A stretch of 64,000 bases of DNA from assembly GCA_964234715.1 (NCBI GenBank), contig OZ174275.1. One strand, given 5' to 3'. The notes below the pieces were generated by a model. The model was not told where the DNA came from. It was given only the letters and a program-made list of their open reading frames with translations, and searched no databases. Shown in pieces: positions 1,613-61,000 of this stretch; position 1 is the stretch's first letter; each line of letters opens with the position of its first letter. Origin of the DNA: Podarcis melisellensis (Eukaryota). Position numbers and translations under genes: made by a program.

Positions 1613-4600
1613 AAGGTGGTAGCCTAGTGAACCTTCAGACCATACCCTGGGAAACAGGTTTTCCCTGCATGGGGGAAAGCTATTGAACAAGAATGTTCAG
1701 CAAAACACCTACAGCAGGCAGGGCAGGGCAGAAAGGTCAAAGGGCCCCTGCTCCAGTTGCTAATGGTCCTCTGGTTAAGAGAATGAGTTTTCTGATGCTT
1801 TTAACATAAAACATGGAGGGAAAGATGCATGCACCTGTATATTGTGTATTTTAAGCAAGGATCCCATTTACCCAAATCTTTTGCATTGAATCAACACATG
1901 AGAGGAGAGAACAAAGACAAGTATGCTTCCATGATCTGGCCCCCTTGCTCCCCTGTAACCCCCCCAAGGGTTGGAAAGTCAGGACACTACATTGTGTGGG
2001 GAGCCTACATGAATAGGCAAACACCCATTTATCAATGTGTGGATGATGGTGATGGGGATTGCAGTGGTGTGCAAAGGTTGTGCACTTGTCTCTGCTTTGC
2101 ATGTGGATTAAACCAAGGGGGGGTGGAATCCTGAAATAAGGCTAAAGTGAGAAGAAGCGGGGGGCATTTTACATGCCTTTCAAATGAGTGAAATTAATTT
2201 CCACTTTGCATTGGAACATAGGCAGGGGAAAAATGTGTCTTTGTATGTTGGATAAATATTACGGATGCAAAATGAATTCATACAGACCATCACTTAGATC
2301 CACACGCTCACATAAACACTCCAGTGTAATGGAGAAATGAGATCTCAAACAAAGAGGGAGAGAGAGAGATTCTCTGCAGCATGCCAAAGGAATAGGGTTG
2401 TGGATTTTTTTCCACACTGTTTCTTCCCTACTTCCCCTGTCACAGTAAAAGATAAATGAACTTAGCTGACACTGTTATTGTTTCCTATAATTGCAGCTAT
2501 GTGCTTATACTAAGGAAGATGAAATACAGAATCTTTGCTTCCCTAGAGACTTCTGGGAGACAAGGGAGGGAAAATGCAACAGAATACAGTAATGTGTGCA
2601 TCATTAAGGGAGGCACTGAAACTGCCTTGAATCAACATGCATTTTTCAGCAACACATTCTGTCATCTTGAACGAGCGATCAGGATGGCAAGGAACAGACA
2701 AGCGGGGTTCCACTGAGGCCATGTTGGGTGAGATTTTCTCTTAACTAGCCTGTAGTTGAAAAAAGGAACAGAAAGCTCTAGGGCTAATCAGCGATGAGCA
2801 GAAATGGCATACCAGACCATGTTAAATGAATAAAGAAGATGTCACAGGAATCCTAAGGCTCCCCCCACAACTCAATTCCCTTCCTGTAATGCAACTATTG
2901 CTTGAAAGAGTCCTATATTTGGGGCATTCTATGAATAGCAGATGACAGTGAGCCTGTAGGCTGTACAGTGAGAGATGCGTTGTTTGTGCACATGTAGTTT
3001 GTAAGACAGCTTGGATAATTGTGCTTATGGGTGTCCCCCTGAGTACAGTACAATGTGCTTAATTTTCTTTCCATGCCAGTCCTTTAAAAAAAACACAAAA
3101 CCCGCTATGTTTAGATCTAATAAAATAATATTTCTTTGGTGACCTACAGAATATTCTGGAATTAAAAATAGAAGCTACACACGTTGTTAATGAAAGACTA
3201 GGCTGCTTCGCAGATGTGGCAACTAAAATATGAATGGGTCAGTGACTGGCCTAAATAAAGGGAATTAAAAGTAGGGGAAATAAAATGAGAAACGTAGAGA
3301 GCCAAGGGGTGCAGTGGTTTCACATAGCGAACACTGCAAATTCTATGAAGATCGCAGGGCGGTTCACAAAGTAAATTTACAAAATGAGTACACAAAATAC
3401 ATAAAGAAAAACACCAAAGCCAAACCAATACCCACCCCCCCACTCCCACAAATACATTTAAAAGGCTGTAGGTTGTTTAATGAGACCTGGTTATAGAGAA
3501 ACATTTTTACCTGGCCTCTAAAGAAGCATCGCTGAAACCAAAGAGTAGGAGGCTTACACTCCCCATCCCCAGCTGTAGGTTCTGTTGCATAGGATGCCAT
3601 TTCGGGCCATCACACAAAGCAAAACAAAACCAAAAAACCTGTTGTTGAAGACAAATGAGAGGAAACGACATAAGCGATTGCTAATTTGCAGTCTGCCAGG
3701 TTTTATTCTGGGCACAGCCACAGACAGAATATCTGCTAAATTTGTAATGGGACGTGTTTCAACTTTCAAACTTAAAAATGTTCTACATAACTAGCAAAGC
3801 TCCTCTTTATTTAGCTTTGGTATGCGTGCTTTACAAAAATCCACGCTTCACATTTCAGCTGTCTCGCTATATAAAGGTCTGTAGGTCTGTGCTTATTTAG
3901 AGACCTAGATTTATCCCATTAAGGCTTGGCATCTTCTCTTTGTGTGAATCACATCCATCAGAAATCAGAATGAGGTTACAGTGAATTCTCTCCAGGGGCT
4001 TACAGCAGTAAGTCTCTACTGAGAATTTTAACTAAATTTTCTGGCTACATATTTATAAGGGCTCTGTTGTGATTGTGCAGCAACAAAATCTTGCAGGGTT
4101 TTGCCCTTCTGCCCTCCTTTGTTCTGCTTCTTTGAATTACCAAATGATCATTCTGAAGAAGAATTCGGCTGTGAATTGGTGCTGCTCTTACAAGATGTTG
4201 TCATAGGAAGTGGTGTGGGAATCAGCAGCAAAAGAAAACGCTTAGAAAGAAGAAAACAGGATACTGGCTGGTCTGCTCATATTGTACAGTTCTTCTCACT
4301 CACTCGGCAAACACAAATATTTGACATTCTGTCAGCTGTAAATTTAAGAAACCCAGTTTTCTAGTCCTCATGTGACTCAAACCCTGTGAATCCACAGGCA
4401 CTATCTGAGGATGTTTCAGAAAATAGGTGGAGAATGAACCTGGATTTCCTTGAATATCCCATCTATTTCATAATTTTCAGACCCAGTTTATTGTTTTGCC
4501 TGCCAGTTCTAAAACAAGAAGTTAGCTAATGTTTTATCCAATAGAGGACATGTACAACTCTGTGAACGAAGGTGCAGTCAGGTTGTTTGACCGGCTAGGG

Positions 4601-46205: not shown

Positions 46206-48084
46206 GAAACAGAAAAAAGAGAGAAGAAATAGTAAGAACATGTCCCCAGTAAGAGTATTGCTGTTATGCATGTTATGTCTAGATTGCAGGTAGTCTGGAT
46301 TCCAGTAGATCTTCCCATTGGTGCTGGTGGGGCAGCTTGAAATACTTTCCCAAAGGACTATTGTATCTAGCAATTATATCAGTGCACCTTGTCAGTCTGT
46401 TACTGTTACTGAATAAAGCAGAAACATATTTTATTGTTGAGAAGCACCCAAGCAAACTTCTTACAAGTCCTGAGGTATAAAATATGTCTGGGGTTTTTAA
46501 AGTACTTTTGGTATGAGCTAAATAGACTGACATGAATGAAATCTGGGAAGAAGGGAAAAAACATGAAAAAAAACATACAAGGGTAGTCATTCTTCATTAT
46601 GAAAACTGAAATATTAAGAAACCAGGTCATTCACTTAAAATTTATCAGGAGTAAACCTTTTCCAATTTGTTATACTGTGTCAATCTTGATTCAAAATTGC
46701 TGTAATACTGGGCTGCAAACTCCATCTTTAAAACTGTATAAAATATGCTGGATTTTATTTTATTTCTTTTGCTCTGTTTAGTGTAGGGAAGATATATACA
46801 GTCTTCACAAGGAAATCTTTTTTTAAGTGTTCTGATCTCCTGCTGTTCCTCCACTCCAAAGTGAACAAAAATGGCATTTTAAAGAACAGTGTTATTTGTC
46901 CACAGCTGGAATTAATCCAGAGTCATTAGTGGTAGCCAAGAACTGCAAGTTTCCAAAGGGGAAATTGACAAGCTTAGCAAATGTCACGGAAAGGTCTCCA
47001 GCACAGAGATGCTATGCCCAAAGAAATGGAGAATTAGAAAGGGCCTTCTTGTGTAAATGGTTCATGTTCAGCTTCTAAAATACTTGCTGAAATGTAGAGC
47101 TACCACTGCAAATTTAGCGTGAACACCTGATTTTTCTTCCCTTTTAGCGTTCTGTGAAACCAAGCCAAAAAAACCATGATTTATGTCTGAAAAACGCCTG
47201 GGGGAATCACATTTTAATTTTTAGTACTTAGGCCTGGTGCTAAATAATAAATTGAGAAACAATGAGGGCCTATGTAAATGAAATGGACATACCATGAAGG
47301 TTGTCTGAAATTACTTTCTATGGTAGCTTTCTCCACATAGGAATGTTTCAGTATGCAGTGCAGCACCTCACAGGAGGATGTTTCTCCATCTCACTGCAAA
47401 CTTACAAAATGATTGTTGTGGATTGAAGAAAACCACCTGATTGGCACAATGACTGGCTGCCATGATACACAGATACAGTCGCCATGGGATGCAGTTGAAT
47501 TAAAGGTTCTCTGACCCCTATTAAAACTGAGCTGGTAGTAAGTGAACCACCACACCTACAGATGCCAGGCTTGTTTGGGGCAAGTGTTTCACAATGTATA
47601 CTTCATATCCACACATCATGATAAGGATTGGGTGCTGCAAGTGGATTGTTTCATGCAATCTAACTGAAATTTATAACTGACCTGCTGCTGAACGCTATTT
47701 TGGCACCTGTTTATAGAAGGTTCGGCATTGGTCATCTACCTGTTTTTTTTTCAGTAGGACAAAATCTACAGTCATGTCACTATTTGATTACATAGATGAA
47801 CCTTTAAAAGAAAAAGAGTTGCCACATTTTTTTCACTTTATCATTGGATTTCTCTCTACAAAATGAGCATGTGCAGCTTCTCAAAAATCCCAAGAGACAG
47901 TGGGAACTACCCAGTTTTTCCTTTGCAGCATCAGGGTGATGCAAATTACGAGATCTCTTGACTATAATTCTTTTTCAAATGTTCAAAAGAACATAAAGCT
48001 AGTAAAGGTTAAAGGAACCACTTTAGGTGTAAGATATGACACTCAGGTCTACTTTAACCTCCTGCTGGTGCTTTGCTATTGCAG

Positions 48085-48316
48085 AGATCGAATGAGAACC
48101 TCTGTCAATGTTGTGGGAGATTCCTTTGGAGCTGGCATTGTCTATCACCTCTCCAAGGCAGAGTTGGAAAACATTGATGCCCATCACAAAGGACACGAAG
48201 ATATTGAAATGACCAAGACACAGTCCATTTATGATGACATGAAAAACCACAGGGAAAACAACTCAAACCAGTGTGTTTATACAGCCCACAACTCTGTCAT
48301 AATAGATGAGTGCAAG
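48085..48316 (+). CDS. SLC1A2: SLC1A2 exon 10: [17 protein letters not shown]...[11 protein letters not shown]
   Basis: Acceptor ctattgcag|A, donor AAG|gtacct, 232 nt; lies within ORF 47900..48355. Confidence 0.98.
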
Positions 48317-48355
48317 GTACCTTTCACATTTATGGATATTGAGACTTGCATCTAG
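48317..48355 (+). CDS. SLC1A2: GLT-1b/EAAT2b C-terminal extension (exon 10 read-through): [12 protein letters not shown]
   Basis: The frame stays open past the exon-10 donor to TAG at 48353-48355. Nearly identical to the rodent GLT-1b tail as recalled (PFPFLDIETCI); ends in a T-C-I PDZ ligand. Confidence 0.92.
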
Positions 48356-50355
48356 TCAATCATACCTCATCTTCCTTTGTTTTTTAACCTGCATGTATTT
48401 TTTAAAAAAATGTATCACTAATAATGGGACAATGCTGCATGCTATGTTGATCAGTTTAAAGACATGGGTACATATATTGTTTGCTTTCTTTGAGTATTTA
48501 AATTGCTAATGCATGCCATGTTTACAAATAACATTGTGTTCTACAGGGTGTTTTGGAAGGCAGTGCAATGCAATGGGGGAATATTGTCCAGTTAAGCATT
48601 CTTATATCTTCCCATTACAAGAAAGGTTGTAAATCCAGTTAATAAGGCCTATAGATAAATAGGAGAATTGATGTGGCAATGAAAACGGTTAAAACTGCCT
48701 AAAAACAAACAAACAAAAAAATCTCCACCATTTTCTCCTCCAGATCAGAGCAATTCTGTTGCCTTTGTGTGTTTGGAGAATCCATGATGGACCAGCTACC
48801 ACATTTAAAGCCCTGTTGCGTAGCTATAGCCTGAGCAGGAGGCTTTTCCTCTCTGTTGGCATCTTCTGTTTCTTTCCCTCCCCTCTCATGGACCGCAGGT
48901 GGGGAAGGGGGTCAACAACACCAATTCCAGGGGTGACATAGTTTGGGGGCTTTTGGGGGAGTGTGTCAGGGGAACGAGGGGACTTGAAATCCTGTAGGTC
49001 CATGACCTCCCCCAACATGCCTCTTGAACTCCATGATTCAGACCACACCACTGGTGGAACACCACTGACAGGCCATACCAGAGGATCTCCAGCATCGTAA
49101 GTGTCATTCTGCTGGAGGCCTTCTCTTTCCACTGGTGGAAAGGCACTTCCTCCATTTCTTCTCATCCCTCGGCCAACCAAATGTGATTTTGGCCTTTTAA
49201 ATGATATTTAAAAGTGACAGTTCAGAGTGCAAGATAGTTAACTGTTTGGAAATAGAAGTTCAGTCAAATCCAGAGATTTTTCTTGTGCATCCCACAGGGA
49301 GGGGCAGAAGCAACACAAAAGTCATTTGTTTCAGTGGGTTATGTTCCAGGAGCCTGCCATTTTCCCGAGTAGAAAAAGGCAGAAATTGGAAGCACACTTC
49401 CTTGCTTCTTTTGAAATCAACGGCAGATACTTCCAAGTGAACGTAATTAAGATCAGGCTGTAAGGAACCTGGAGGAGAAAATATGAAGCTGTTTCTATTT
49501 ATATACAGTTAGGGGAAGCAAAGATAAGCACAAGAAAGAAGCACATTCTCATGCTTCCCCTGACACCCAAATAAATGCAAAGCCTGTCCTTTTGTGGATC
49601 GAGGCTTTCCATGACACACTGTAGAGACACATGCACTGTACCTCGTCCTCAGCAACTGAGAGCTCTTGTGCTCGCCATAATATTTATGCTTTATTTTCAT
49701 TTTCATTGTGGGCCATTCCAATGCCATTTTTGTGATTTCTGTCTATTGCTGTTTGTAAATTACTCGGTTTAAGAAGAGATTATAACAAGAATTGTCCTGA
49801 CCAAGAGTTACCATGAACTTGAGGAAACTCCATGGCTGAATGAGAAACTAATTTGGATGCTTTGCATCTTGCTTCCAAACTCATCCTTGTGGACGCATCA
49901 CTGTTGTTCAGCATGATGTCTGAATGCAGCCATTGACGAGACTGGGCTTGGCTGGAGAATTGAACTGAACAAACGTTTTTCTTTAGGTAGATCTACAGTT
50001 TTCCCTAATGTGCTGTCATTAAAGGATTTCCATAGCCATTTCAGATTTTGATTAATGTTTCAGCTGGATAGTCATCAAGCTCACTTACTTGCTACTGATA
50101 TTTCTAAGTCCCAGTAGGGAGAACAGGGGAGAGAAACCATTGATGGCTGCGTACAACATCAGGTTTCTAAAATCACACAAGTAATTTAAAAATAACAAAG
50201 CTTTGCTGTAACTAAAAACAATCTGACAGAAAGGCTTTATAAATATGCCAGTTCTAAAGAAAGGCACCATTGCTCTGACATTATGCCTAGGACCTGAGTT
50301 TATTTCTCTGAAGTAGGCATCTGCTGTTTTAAACATTTCTCAGATCACATAGTTA

Positions 50356-50369
50356 TGTATAATAATAAA
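50356..50369 (+). terminator. Candidate poly(A) signal for the GLT-1b transcript
   Basis: TGTA at 50356 followed by AATAAA at 50364-50369, between the b stop codon and the c exon. Another AATAAA lies near 49570. Confidence 0.35.
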
Positions 50370-50577
50370 GTGTAGAAGAATCCCATGGTTAAAAAATTGA
50401 GCCCCTTTGAGTTAAGCACATAGTTCAGTCATGCTCATTTAAATACTGCATATTGAAAATCTGGACAGAAAAGTTGTTGAGCCTATTCAAAATTATTATT
50501 TTAAGTTTTGACCAAACTTTTTGAGTCTTTTTGCATGCAAAGTCTCAACAAACATCGCCGAAAATGACAATGTCAAC

Positions 50578-50692
50578 AGGGGTTGCCATATGTCCGGATT
50601 TCCCCAGACATTTCAGCAATTCCTGCCCAGACTCAGTTTCCAACTGCTGATTGCCAGCTATGTACAGGAAATTCCAGATGCGTGCAACCCTA
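50578..50692. mobile_element. PIF/Harbinger-like MITE
   Basis: gggttgccatatgtccggattt...aaattccagatgcgtgcaaccct inverted ends. Confidence 0.55.
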
Positions 50693-51166
50693 TTACATTT
50701 ATCTCGATTATTCTTGATAAGTTTAAAAAATTACAAGCAGCGCAGAAAAGTATGTGAATGAAATTGTAGAAAATGTCCTGCAAGAGAAAAGTTTGCTGCA
50801 ACTCTGGTCAGTGGTTGTTGTTGTTGTTTCTTTGTCTCAAGTATTAATATAATGACATGTCATTTCTACTTAATATTCTAAACATCTTCCTAGTTTGATT
50901 GCTTTGCACAGCTAATATATGCTTTATTAGCAAGCTATGTCGATTGTTGTTGCATGGGCTGTTTTTCTGTATTATTTTTTTAAAAAATCACAATTCACAT
51001 TACTTCCTTTGCAAACTAACCTATAATTTCAGTTCCAAATATGTGGTGTATTCTGTTCTTTATAATGCATGTGTTTCCCTTTTAATTATCTAAGAAAGAG
51101 GCTGGCTTTGTTTCAAACATGGGTACATTGTCATGATTTCATGTCCCAATGCTCCCATGCGTCCAG

Positions 51167-51202
51167 TTTGTCCATCATGTGGAATATCAGTCCTGTCTTT
51201 AA
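51167..51202 (+). CDS. SLC1A2: Putative GLT-1c alternative terminal exon: FVHHVEYQSCL*
   Basis: Acceptor gctcccatgcgtccag|TTT is in phase 0 with the exon-10 donor; 11 codons plus TAA. Resembles the recalled mammalian GLT-1c tail ending VEYQSWV. Confidence 0.78.
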   Translation, partial: FVHHVEYQSCL

Positions 51203-51903
51203 GTTTTCATGCGAAGCTGAGGACAGTAACATGAAAGGTAAGCTAGGAAATAATGGGGTTCTGTTTAGAATTAGATGAAAGACTCCCTTACTATGTAAAG
51301 GTCCAGTTCATTTCTGCCCAGTCAAACAAGCACATTGGCCATTTTGGCTTATCTAGCCATGCATAGCACATCTCCACTGGGGAAAAAAGATGGCGCTTGG
51401 CTGGCTGTGGGGTTGTTGTTTTTTTCCTTTAGAAAAAATATTGACTGCTGAGATGTTGCTTACAAGCCAGTATTTCCCATGGAATGATTTAACATTCTTG
51501 GTCTTCCACAATTGTTATCAAGTTAACATTGAAGTGTGAACCTTTAGCTGAGACTCTGATACGGCTGTTTGTGGTTTTGTATGTAAAATGCAGCCTAGTT
51601 AAGTATGGTTTGACTCAGTTGTAACTGCACCTTCAACATTACACGATCGGACACAGTAGTGAACAGTGATGTTTCCCAGCAGGTCCTTGTGGAGGATCAA
51701 TTCTGCCGTTTACTATTTAGCTTTTTGTAACATATGTGCATATGTATGTGTGTATGATTCACATATGTATGTGTATCTCTGTGCACATCAGGCCTATAGA
51801 CCTGATTTCTCAACATTCTGCTTTGTGGACAGAGCACTATTGTAATTTTGAGTTCTTCCTGCAGATTGAGAAACATTGAAAGGGCAGAACTGATTCAGTA
51901 CAA

Positions 51904-51909
51904 AATAAA
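51904..51909 (+). terminator. Candidate poly(A) signal for the GLT-1c transcript
   Basis: AATAAA between the c exon and the exon-11 acceptor, with U-rich sequence downstream. Confidence 0.3.
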
Positions 51910-52042
51910 AACACGTATGTATATTTTCACACATAGATTTAATGTAAATCTTGTAAATATTCAGTTTTGCTGTTTAATTCTTGACATTTCTCGCAAAAGT
52001 GCCTTGATCTTTAAGTTAGGTGTTGATGACAATTATTTACAG

Positions 52043-52117
52043 GTCACCCTGGCAACAAATGGCAAATCTGCAGACTTCAATGCTGTTGAAGAAGAACCTT
52101 GGAAACATGAGAAATAA
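52043..52117 (+). CDS. SLC1A2: SLC1A2 exon 11 coding part (GLT-1a tail): VTLATNGKSADFNAVEEEPWKHEK*
   Basis: Acceptor attatttacag|GTC; stop TAA at 52115-52117. Confidence 0.97.
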   Translation, partial: VTLATNGKSADFNAVEEEPWKHEK

Positions 52118-53573
52118 GGAAGGAACAATCCAAGTCCACCTCTAACAAGTCCCAGAAGTTGTATTGTGGTAAAAGCTGGTATCAAGATTCAAGAAGATTT
52201 TTCACTGTCTTCATTTAGTATAAAAACTATTCGCTTATTTAATGCTCTTAACGGAAACTTAGAAACAGTCTCATAAAGTCATTGCTCCTTTAGCATCTTT
52301 GCCAAATAATTCATAACCATCTCTCTCAATTGTGTCACCATTTGAATGGATGTGGCTGAAGGACACCCTGTCAGTTCAAGAGATGTATTTTTGCTGGGCT
52401 TCCTCTGTTCAACTCAAGACGTAGAGAATGTAGATACTGTACTGCAAAAGAGGAAAGATCAGAAAGCCCCAATGACTGGTGAGACTCTGGCTAATAAGCA
52501 TTAAGTATAATGTAAAGGGTGCAGTCTTTTGCAATGCCTCTTCTCCTGCTGTAGATGTCAACCAGCACCTTGGTGCATATCAAATACAGTTAGCACTGTG
52601 GACTGTAATATATGATCACTGTAAATGTTTTATATGTGCTTTATTAATACGTGGCATATGATATTCTCAGTTCCCTATTATTCATGCCATCCTCACATCG
52701 ATGGTCATATCCCAGTTCTTTTAACCATCCAGAGCCCCATGCATGCCAGATCCCAGGGGATATCGTCATTTTCATCACCCAAAACTTGAAGATATAGGGA
52801 AAATGATTTGCAGTTTATAGTGGTGGATGGGTGTGAATGCCTGTGTGCATGGTCCCCAAAAATGAATTAACCCCTGGGCAGCATGTATACATGGCTTGAC
52901 CATGATTGGTTTTTTCTCCAATTGAGTTCAATGGACTGTATTGCCAGTATATAAATTTAGGTGTGAAATATGTAGTTTTCAGAGCTAATAAACCATCCCA
53001 GATTGTATGCTATTCATACTAGCAACTAGCACAATTCTGATTATCCATACAAGGAGAAACATAGACTGCAATATGTGACTGTCTCAATCCAGCAACGTCA
53101 AAGTACCATATTGATGCATATCACTGGTATTTCAGCAGGAAAATCTGCAGCAAGTAATATCTTGTCACCCTTTTGCTGAGACCTGGGATGGAACAAGGTG
53201 CTATTCTTTAGGGATAAAATGTCTGCAAATGAATCACATCTTTTGCATTCATTTTGCTAAAAACAAACTTAGCAAGTTTAATATTGTTTAACAGCTGGAA
53301 GCTATTTATACACTGGCGAAAATGTTTTATATGTTCGGTCCTTGTGAACAGAGAACTGAAACATAAGATATGGTAATAATCTTGTCAGTTATATCTTGGT
53401 TTGTACAAATGGGTTTGGGTAAAGAATATCCATTCAGAATTGTAACAGAATTATATTTAGAAATTGTTGTGATGCCCAAACTGCAATAATTCCTTGACAA
53501 CCCATCATAAAAGGACACACTGCCACAGCAAATATCTGTAAATTGGAGCAGGAAAGATTTAATCTCGTTGACA

Positions 53574-58080: not shown

Positions 58081-61000
58081 CCTGGTGTCTTTACCAGGAG
58101 AATTAGGAAGGGTCTCCATCCTGCAATATACAAAGCGTCTGATCCAGAATAATTTATTCACCAGTATATTTTGTCCCCTAACCCTTCTCCTTACTGCATT
58201 TTCCTGTAGTCCCCAATGTTTCCAATGGAATCAATTACAAAGTCTGTGTACTTTAGGATTGCAGCTTCTGAAGAAGTCCCTGATCCAGCTGTAGTCATGG
58301 GCCATCAGGCATAAGAACTGGTGTCCTGTAATTGGCATCAAGTGATGCATCCAGCTAGTTCAAAGTGGCTTGGGTGAGAATCATAACGTGGAAGGAGATG
58401 AGCATCTGTATTTATTTATGTGCACAGACGACGTTTGCTGGATTGGCCAGAAGCCTTCAGAGACCAGGCCTGCAGTTCCTCCACAGTCTTTTCTAGACTG
58501 GCTAAAGTAACAGGCTTTGTCAGTTCACTCAAAGCCAGATCACAAGTTTTGCTGCTCGACAAATACTGTACAAGAAAGGAGGCGGCAGCAAAGCCAATAA
58601 GGGGTCATAGTTATTTAATGAATAACAGCCAAAACTTAGCCATGTGTACTCAGAAGTGAGTCCTGTTGAATTCAAGGGGGGTTATTCCCGGGTATGTGGG
58701 TTCTTATGCAGGGGGAAGGGAACAGAAGACAGGCAAATGGCCACATTCAATGGCCTGCTGAGCTCTTGCTGGTGTAGTCAGAAGTGAGGTTGGAATGGAT
58801 CTTTTGTTTTTCCTTGTCTTCTTCCTGACCAAGAATTTATTTTAGGCTAGGACACAAAGGTTTCCACAGGGAGAGTATCAACGAAGTTGGATCTTCCTCT
58901 GGAGGGCAGAGCTTTGCCCTTATAGTGTGGAATTGAATCGGTTTTATGGCCATGGAACACCTCAGTGATCATAGGGTTGCAGGGTCTGTCACGTAAAATG
59001 ATATTTATACAAGTTCAGACAACGTAAGGAACTGCAGAACTGTGTTTCATGTCTTTGCCTTTGTACAAAAGGACCAAACAACATTCTTATGGGACCATGT
59101 CAATCGACTTGCACATATAGAAATACCTCCTGATTTTTAAGACATTTATAAGAAAGCAAGCGGTATATTTTTCACCAGGATGAATGAGATCTGTTTTTCT
59201 TTTATTTCCTTAGCAGTTAATTATAAAGTATCTCTAGCCCTATGGCCTTGCTATTACCCAAGCACATTGAATGAGCAAATAAGAGTTATTAAAACCTGAG
59301 GAACAGCTTAAATACAATGTAGATGTTGTCTCTTGGCACACCAACTGCACAGCACACACAGCAGAGGATATGCACTGAAACCATCAACGATCCATGAAAC
59401 AGGTATATTTAACTAGAGAAACCTGTTGTACATGCCTTGCGTTTGGGTGAGCAAACTGTACAGTAGATCTAGAATGTTGTCAATGTAAACTTATTTTGTA
59501 ATCCTCTTCTATTTTAAAAGCAGAGTTTTCAAATACTCTCGTAATTAGAGCCAAATGTGTTCTAGTGGTAAGATAAAAGTACTAATAATAGCTGTCAAAG
59601 CATGACACTCTTAAGAATACCAGTCTTGGTGCGTTGTGTTCCGCATGAAGAACAGTGCCTCTCCGCACTTTGTGTAGATAATGTAGCTTATCTTTGTGTA
59701 ATTTCAGTGAAATTGTGTATACAGTATTAATAGTTGCCATTTGGTTTTTAATTTAACATCAGTTATGCTGGAGTAGAAACTTTATAATATGTTCTGAAAA
59801 GAATTTGGGTTGGGTTGGCTGCTTGTCAGTATTTCCATCCCCAGGTATTTATCAGAATAATCTCCATAGGCAGATAACTGGTTTTATATGTTGATAATAT
59901 AAACACGTTGGTGCATGTCAAAGTCTGAATAATTGTTGGAACCTTTTATTGCAGCCGACTCATTGTACATATGTTAGTCTTTGTTTTTATATATCTAACC
60001 AGCAGCATGCGAGTGTGTGTGTATGTTTGTAAATCCCTGGCACTTAGTGAATGTGACTGGCCGTCTCATTTTGCTGCACTGTGAATGCAATATCACTGCT
60101 ACATTAAAGAATTAATGTAGGCATATTATTCTAAGTTTATAATATTAATATATTTTCGTCTGTATACCTGATATGTTGGAAACGTAGAGACATGATTATT
60201 AGTAAGTTGCTGCATCAGTTAGCTCATTGGTCAGAAGTAAAAACAAACCTTGCTGTACTCTTTACTTTGGATGCCATGCTTACCGTTTGCAATTGCAATG
60301 TCTGTTTCTGCTTTGCAACATGGACTCCTGCTGTCATCCAACAACATTTCAAGATTCCTCTGATGTTCATTTGCTTTCAGTGAACGACAACAGTATCCAC
60401 TGAAGAATCTGCATAACCTGAGCCTGTCATTCTGCTTTAAATCAAGGCACAGACATGCCTGTTAACTATAGACACTGGACTGTTTCCAGCTAAGTTTACT
60501 CAGAATAGACACACTGAAATTAATGGACCCAAATTGGCCAAATCCATTAATTTCAATGGATCTACTCTGGGTTTATCTAATGCTGGATGCAAGCCTATCA
60601 TTATCATTCTTAAGATTTGTGTTACACCAGCTAGCCAGAAGCACAGAGACAAATACTGCTTCCATTTTTCAAAAGTAAGCATATGAAAAATTATAACAAA
60701 TCCCATTCATGTCAGTTTTGGAAACAAACAACTGTGTTTTTGAGGTGTGCTTTACCTGTTGTGTTTATGTGCAGTTGTATCTCGGAATTTCCATGCACCA
60801 GTAATCATACTTTTTATATATTAAGAATTTGAATGTCTCTGATAATAAAGAAGCTCTCTGAAAAAGAGCTACTAGTGGAAAGGCTGGCAGGATTCACTGT
60901 TGCTTTCACTCAATAAATGTAGCACCTTTACTGTGGCATATTCCATGGGATAAAATATCCCATACGGAAGCTAGTTGTCATCTGCCTTAAAAGTACTCTA

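Follow-up and report, generated by a model that had tools for sequence, protein, structure and literature searches.

The glutamate transporter GLT-1 (EAAT2) removes most of the synaptic glutamate, and its C-terminal variants set the scaffold partners and the location of the transporter. One of these variants, the mammalian GLT-1c (EAAT2c), was reportedly described by Rauen et al. in 2004. EAAT2c is composed of exons 1-10 followed by a unique exon taken from intron 10, and it carries a PDZ motif at its end (PMC6033743, PMC3872404). It has been found in the retina and photoreceptors of rat and human and makes up about 1% of the hippocampal transporter (PMC6033743, PMC3872404), and in the mammalian retina the GLT-1c protein was documented by antibodies (PMC3872404). 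According to a review, exon 11 is lost from the mammalian EAAT2c (PMC6033743). In our study the mammalian tail sequence was taken from database proteins. The tail SLHYVEYQSWV, which the initial annotation of this DNA had given as the approximate mammalian ending, was found letter for letter in NCBI models of Rattus rattus, Vulpes/Canis, Peromyscus and Molossus and is invariant in these four, and the opossum model ends in SLHLVEYQSWV.

Like GLT-1c, GLT-1b (EAAT2b) gives the transporter a short alternative C-terminus with a PDZ-type end. It differs in being made by failed splicing at the exon 10 donor, with no added exon, and in having a tail that is far more conserved among vertebrates. The GLT-1c exon is annotated as coding in birds and mammals, and no paper on GLT-1c outside the mammals was found in our literature search. 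Here we describe a short segment in intron 10 of a lizard SLC1A2 gene which, as the best explanation of our observations, is probably the lacertid orthologue of the GLT-1c (EAAT2c) alternative exon.

SLC1A2 and the putative GLT-1c exon of the lizard

The window, by which we mean the whole stretch of 64,000 nucleotides that was analyzed, carries the 3' half of SLC1A2 (EAAT2/GLT-1) on its plus strand. Exons 7-11 translate as EAAT2, and the proteins matched by the exons of the window are named EAAT2 proteins with PF00375, which places the gene in the sodium:dicarboxylate symporter family. The protein encoded by exon 10 is identical to the EAAT2 of Podarcis and Zootoca, and RNA contigs end or join precisely at both borders of this exon (Table 1). 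The exon 10 donor, AAG/GTACCT (gtacct from 48317), is weak, and reading through it gives a GLT-1b tail that recurs in a skink, a stork, a placental mammal and numerous further vertebrates. Exon 11, with its acceptor at 52041-52042, joins exon 10 in phase 0 and encodes the GLT-1a tail and its stop; this tail does not differ from the one in Podarcis raffonei isoform X1. The exon 10 and exon 11 matches together mark the DNA as lacertid. Among the fragments returned by the protein search, the GLT-1b tail or a near-identical version of it was encountered from fish to mammals.

Table 1. Features of SLC1A2 intron 10 and its neighboring exons (positions in the window; a slash marks a splice border)
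Feature	Positions	Strand	Remarks
SLC1A2 exon 10	48085..48316	+	ends ...GAT GAG TGC AAG (DECK), phase 0
GLT-1b tail (12 residues)	48317..48355	+	read-through of the exon 10 donor
Conserved island, intron 10	51063..51250	+	about 100 nt of upstream intron, cassette exon and donor
3' splice site of the cassette	51140..51166	+	moderate pyrimidine tract (0.70 pyrimidines), CAG end at 51164-51166
Putative GLT-1c cassette exon, 71 nt	51167..51237	+	71 nt also in skink, stork and placental contig
Coding part, FVHHVEYQSCL-stop	51167..51202	+	TAA at 51200-51202, 35 nt ahead of the donor
5' splice site GTAAGCTAGGAAA	51238..51250	+	AAG/GTAAG the same in 8/8 amniotes
Lacertid 50-nt cassette exon, tail IEKH-stop	51865..51914	+	cag/ATT GAG AAA CAT TGA...AACAC/gtatgt, TGA at 51877-51879
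Exon 11 coding part, GLT-1a tail VTLATNGKSADFNAVEEEPWKHEK-stop	52043..52117	+	RNA contig joint 48316^52043

The putative exon lies in intron 10, 2850 nt past exon 10 and 805 nt ahead of exon 11. The letters that the initial annotation had pointed out were confirmed: a CAG at 51164-51166 (AG at 51165-51166) is followed at 51167-51202 by TTT GTC CAT CAT GTG GAA TAT CAG TCC TGT CTT TAA. Since the exon 10 and exon 11 junctions are both in phase 0, DECK-FVHHVEYQSCL-stop is a legitimate reading, and the claim that the segment is in phase with the exon 10 donor stood. At a 48316/51167 junction, also in phase 0, the 11 codons and the TAA would replace the GLT-1a tail, and the joined reading of exon 10 and cassette is predicted to end in DECKFVHHVEYQSCL. 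As had likewise been noticed, the lizard tail has the length of the mammalian one (11 codons each), shares H-x-VEYQS with it and keeps an S-x-hydrophobic end, SCL against SWV. As a pattern, the end S-C-L fits the class I PDZ form S/T-x-hydrophobic.

The segment had been taken for a 36-nt terminal exon, a description for which that of a 71-nt cassette seems the better one, because a donor identical in eight of eight amniotes lies 35 nt past the stop and no poly(A) signal is near. In the lizard this donor has the consensus letters AAG/GTAAGC, with the border at 51237/51238. Neither AATAAA nor ATTAAA occurs between 51203 and 51903, the next such signal being 700 nt downstream, and a terminal exon with its own poly(A) site was rejected on this ground. 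The cassette is favored by the invariant donor, by snake and Anolis gene models in which this donor is joined to exon 11, and by the lack of AATAAA and ATTAAA in 51203-51903. Going by its letters, the exon looks like a stop-carrying cassette of 71 nt that would turn exon 11 into 3'UTR. In the placental contig an AATAAA is found about 117 nt past the donor, and in the stork an ATTAAA is found 34 nt past it; terminal use through donor read-through is possible in these two lineages.

In the mechanism that we propose, the cassette would be included between exons 10 and 11 and translation would end inside it. FVHHVEYQSCL would then replace the GLT-1a tail, which by the lizard count has 24 residues, exon 11 would become 3'UTR, and the new end S-C-L would have the form of a class I PDZ ligand, like the mammalian S-W-V. 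By an established rule, the threshold for nonsense-mediated decay is a distance of 50-55 nt. As the stop is just 35 nt ahead of the last junction, below this limit, the mRNA should escape nonsense-mediated decay. Inclusion would probably be rare or tissue-restricted, as it is in mammals, where the form amounts to about 1% of the hippocampal transporter and is enriched in photoreceptors.

Copies of the exon in mammals, birds and other reptiles

The lizard and mammalian tail peptides are identical at 6 of 11 positions. About 0.5 matches of this quality are expected by chance in the six frames of the 64 kb window, and two were seen, the second at 59600; the peptide similarity is thus weak by itself, and the DNA alignments are decisive. 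Taken alone, these counts would suit a chance short ORF behind a chance AG, with no relation to GLT-1c. We consider such a coincidence extremely improbable, and it was ruled out by synteny and by alignments with a common acceptor, stop and donor, since highly significant syntenic matches were obtained to mammal, bird, turtle, gecko and skink DNA. In blastn the 189-nt island at 51063-51250 was 75% identical to positions 4342-4530 of the placental contig L006 (E = 5.6e-30), and it matched stork (E = 1e-42), turtle (E = 1e-62) and gecko (E = 5e-54), each time between exons 10 and 11. Over 48000-53500, lizard and placental DNA can be aligned at four places only: exon 10, the island, exon 11 and a small part of the 3'UTR. 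When the two are aligned base by base, the CAG acceptor, the TAA and AAG/GTAAGCTAGGAAA coincide.

The placental Logan contigs L006-L011 were reached via exon 10 fragments among the proteins, and they carry the ORF SLHYVEYQSWV-stop about 3.1 kb past exon 10. Contigs L006-L015 were judged to be non-human on two grounds: exon 10 departs from the human entries at two residues, and the exon 11 tail is that of orca and narwhal. Human sequences entered the tail counts as protein entries, and all contigs compared were non-human. The reptile and bird Logan contigs (L001-L005) are short and end ahead of the exon site. When short proteins were searched with exon 10, only GLT-1b read-through fragments and one GLT-1a were returned, with no GLT-1c tail among them.

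Judged by intron position, phase, acceptor, stop and length, which all agree, the lizard segment and the mammalian GLT-1c exon are orthologous. It follows that the GLT-1c exon is older than the mammal-sauropsid split. The same age had been claimed in the initial annotation, and it is borne out by the DNA orthology to the placental, by the annotated bird exon and by an intact copy in a skink. The GLT-1c exon is therefore not peculiar to mammals. It occurs across the amniotes as an element with fixed borders, and comparison among them can be used to ask what it is for. This is a modest addition, and the current understanding is not overturned.

The exon of the mammalian GLT-1c (e.g. Rattus rattus XP_032759686.1) and that of the lizard share the SLC1A2 intron, the phase, the 11 codons and stop, alignable DNA with acceptor, stop and donor, the core H-x-VEYQS and an S-x-hydrophobic end. 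The two differ in 5 of the 11 residues, SL.Y...WV in the mammal against FV.H...CL in the lizard, and the lizard exon is known from DNA alone. The mammalian exon, according to the review, replaces exon 11 as a terminal exon, whereas the conserved donor of the lizard suggests a cassette.

Bird EAAT2 isoforms were also found to carry the exon. The NCBI models of Ciconia (X3) and Anser (X2) both end in FIQHGEFQLCL, that of Mycteria (X4) ends in FIQRGEYQLCL and that of Heliangelus (X3) in FVQHGESQHCL, and a Porphyrio model from another annotation source (isoform 2-T3) ends in FIQHGEIQLCL. Stork genomic DNA (L017) has the bird exon where the alignment puts it, and its acceptor, stop and donor agree with those of the lizard. 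The bird isoforms are like the lizard reading in having an exon that, at the DNA level in the stork, is orthologous, with 71 nt, the same borders and the pattern F-[IV]-x-[HR]-x-E-x-Q-x-C-L, but their position -2 is L or H instead of S, so that the class I PDZ motif is absent. An upstream acceptor that lengthens the tail by 15 residues is annotated in birds as well. Mycteria isoforms using it add CILSCFHVPMLPCIQ, which matches the lizard reading of the upstream intron, ...FHVPMLPCVQ, but in the lacertid a stop precedes that reading and closes the frame.

Lacertids and skinks are lineages that are widely separated within the lizards. In the skink Lerista (L016) the sequence is CAG/TTTGTCCGTCATGTGGAATATCAGTCCTGTCTTTAA, with the reading FVRHVEYQSCL-stop, and the donor is GGAAG/GTAAGC. 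Lacertid and skink are alike in 35 of the 36 ORF bases and in acceptor, stop and donor, and this is the place of top identity in the 1.6 kb that could be aligned. Their identity is 0.95-0.97 on the island and 0.97 on the exon, compared with 0.93 for the coding part of exon 11 and about 0.5-0.75 for most of the other aligned intron.

Eight amniotes were compared, these two lizards together with the stork, the placental, the rattlesnake Crotalus horridus, the garter snake Thamnophis, Gekko japonicus and the turtle Chelonia mydas. The donor AAG/GTAAG is identical in all eight and a canonical in-phase acceptor is present in four, the CAG being retained in lacertid, skink, stork and placental contig. 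These are the intact lineages, and in all four the exon has 71 nt and its stop precedes the donor by 35 nt. In the rattlesnake (L018:28322-28395) the acceptor site has become CAA and in the garter snake (L019:24624-24700) TAA, and earlier stops in the two snakes leave the shortened ORFs FVHHVE-stop and FVHHVEY-stop. A 16-nt deletion in Gekko (L020:59430-59575) has taken out the acceptor and the first codons, and Chelonia (L021:40097-40260) has TGG instead of CAG; both sequences come from old drafts, in which such changes are possible assembly errors. Gekko and Chelonia retain ...HVEYQSCL-stop and the donor, and an in-phase AG is absent from their open stretch. The conservation in other reptiles to which the initial annotation had looked was therefore met with in part: acceptor, frame and stop in the skink, frame and stop in gecko and turtle, but not the acceptor in the two snakes, Gekko and Chelonia.

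Peptide, splice signals and selection

It was proposed in the initial annotation that the PDZ ligand of the tail is under selection. Our comparison does not support this, as the birds end in LCL or HCL, the substitutions are nearly all amino-acid-changing and the flanks are equally conserved. Over the 33 coding bases the lizard differs from the mammal at 6, of which 5 are amino-acid-changing, and from the stork at 6, all of them amino-acid-changing. Conservation is as high in the non-coding 35 nt of the exon, and in about 100 nt of the intron ahead of it, as in the ORF. The tail ends in S-x-V in mammals, in S-x-L in lizards and turtle and in L-x-L or H-x-L in birds; because of these differences the comparison does not show a conserved class I PDZ ligand. 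Selection on such a ligand is made doubtful by the loss of the acceptor in two snakes, gecko and turtle and by the bird tails that have no serine. What has been conserved may not be the peptide. More generally, the invariant donor and the 35-nt stop spacing of the intact lineages, together with a variable peptide and an acceptor that was repeatedly lost or re-invented, argue against a simple conserved-PDZ reading.

An island of this kind could have been kept mainly as an RNA-level regulatory element, the ORF being a by-product from which little or no protein is made, an explanation that we regard as unlikely though by no means far-fetched. It was in this connection that only the donor AAG/GTAAG and blocks such as GAAGCTGAGGA were seen to be identical in eight of eight amniotes, with the acceptor lost in four of the eight, and that the upstream intron and the non-coding part of the exon proved to be conserved to the same degree as an ORF whose changes are nearly all non-synonymous; spliced lizard RNA for the GLT-1c exon was not seen either. 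In its detailed form, which we hold to be unlikely to the same degree, the element would be a strong U1-binding 5' splice site or a decoy exon in intron 10, which is the 3'UTR of the GLT-1b mRNA, and it could steer the choice among the GLT-1a, GLT-1b and other ends. Such an element, however, would need neither the frame nor the stop nor the 11-codon length, which have been kept in mammals, birds and lizards (frame and stop also in turtle and gecko). Moreover, the peptide is invariant in four placental models, and antibodies have documented GLT-1c protein in the mammalian retina. RNAalifold gave no convincing conserved structure for the island (-11.8 kcal/mol, with a covariation term of +1.5), which also speaks against the element, and a conserved RNA structure was rejected as evidence because of this positive covariation term. 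We prefer to see in the island an orthologous GLT-1c exon together with its splice signals.

Lizard transcripts, the lacertid IEKH exon and annotation

Spliced SLC1A2 is present in all three sets of RNA contigs, X1 and X2 on the one hand and X5 on the other, which represent two related species of lizard; the depths given here are contig depths. It had been suggested that a 48316^51167 junction be sought in lizard RNA. None was present in the three sets, in which retina was not knowingly sampled, nor was there any joint at 51167 or 51237 in the X1, X2 and X5 contigs, which come from unspecified tissues and are of a kind that drops rare forms. One X2 contig runs unspliced through 51014-51484 at intron-level depth. 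Use of the GLT-1c exon by lizards is unproven.

In the same RNA, exon 10 is spliced to a different small exon of intron 10, which is spliced in turn to exon 11 (Table 1). The joint 48316^51865 has a depth of 95.5 in X1, 55.9 in X2 and 5.3 in X5, and the joint 51914^52043 has depths of 129.5, 64 and 6.5, compared with 34.1, 27.5 and 9.1 for the direct joint 48316^52043. The resulting IEKH form is the main alternative in the lizard RNA and, by crude contig depth, the major form in X1 and X2; according to the RNA contigs, lacertids mostly use this other, lineage-specific exon to truncate the tail. It corresponds to the 553-aa NCBI isoforms (X1 in Lacerta, X2 in Podarcis and Zootoca). The GT of the IEKH donor is absent in skink, gecko and snakes, and the IEKH exon is for this reason held to be lacertid-specific. 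Like the GLT-1c exon, the lacertid DECK-IEKH exon is a small stop-carrying cassette of intron 10, its stop lies 35 nt ahead of its donor and exon 11 becomes UTR. It differs in its location, in its lacertid-specific splice sites, in its 4-residue tail with no PDZ motif and in being abundantly spliced. An AATAAA lies inside the IEKH exon at 51904. Elsewhere in intron 10, a short repeat-like stretch at 50576-50621 is matched by a large number of unrelated RNA contigs and reads that hang loose at either end; the raw-read run X23 touches the window there only and gives no coverage of SLC1A2.

The GLT-1c exon could also be a relic among squamates: whole in lacertids and skinks but out of use, it would be decaying as in snakes and gecko, and in lacertids its early-stop role would have passed to the newer 50-nt IEKH exon. 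Loss of the acceptor occurred separately in snakes and in Gekko, the IEKH exon prevails in the lacertid RNA contigs (joint depths of 95.5 against 34.1 and 55.9 against 27.5), and the GLT-1c exon is used by no lizard model or contig that we have seen. In rattlesnakes the remnant has even been turned into something else: a small insertion creates a new internal acceptor, TAAG/GTT, and between this and the old donor lies an in-frame exon of 36 nt, VLFLKLRTRTWK. A relic that is not used would, however, be expected to drift like the intron around it, whereas lacertid and skink keep 35 of 36 ORF bases with acceptor, stop and donor. We think that mere decay of this sort is very unlikely, and that a takeover of the early-stop role by the IEKH exon is just as improbable.

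A further possibility, which we put forward as speculation and think quite unlikely to be the full account, is that selection over 300 million years has acted on a small stop-delivering exon and not on the GLT-1c peptide or its PDZ motif. If this were true, the invariant parts would be the donor and a stop kept precisely 35 nt ahead of it, a distance from the last junction at which nonsense-mediated decay would be avoided, and the exon would serve to strip part of the EAAT2 pool of its GLT-1a tail. Each lineage could have re-implemented it freely, the birds with a new motif and a second acceptor, the snakes with an in-frame insert, and the lacertids with IEKH-stop, which has the 35-nt spacing and is now the major form.

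Returning to the exon as an orthologue of GLT-1c, the surmise that it may be unannotated in squamates was upheld in the models seen. None of these models, among them 15 of the 31 proteins in the main squamate cluster, has a GLT-1c-type tail. The lizard models were those of Anolis, Pogona, Lacerta, Podarcis, Zootoca, Sceloporus, Hemicordylus and Phrynocephalus, the gecko models those of Gekko, Heteronotia, Paroedura and Sphaerodactylus, and several snake species were included; the protein search left out proteins of 136-324 residues. The lacertid gene models seen have the IEKH-stop or the GLT-1a tail only. An exon that seems to be missing from lizard gene models is hereby flagged for annotation.

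Some squamate models do make use of the GLT-1c donor. Both the Crotalus tigris X1 model and the older Anolis model G1KCV6 join it to exon 11, and the insert of Crotalus tigris X1 is exactly the VLFLKLRTRTWK framed in the rattlesnake DNA. A cobra model ending in HHAERIWLHFIFQY is, from the protein model alone, probably a case of the same exon. Finally, the EAAT2-like protein P0060 (302 aa) was seen to have a 9-residue insert, TDHNRDHFQ, between the equivalents of exon 10 and exon 11, and this insert may represent another small intron 10 exon in a non-amniote.
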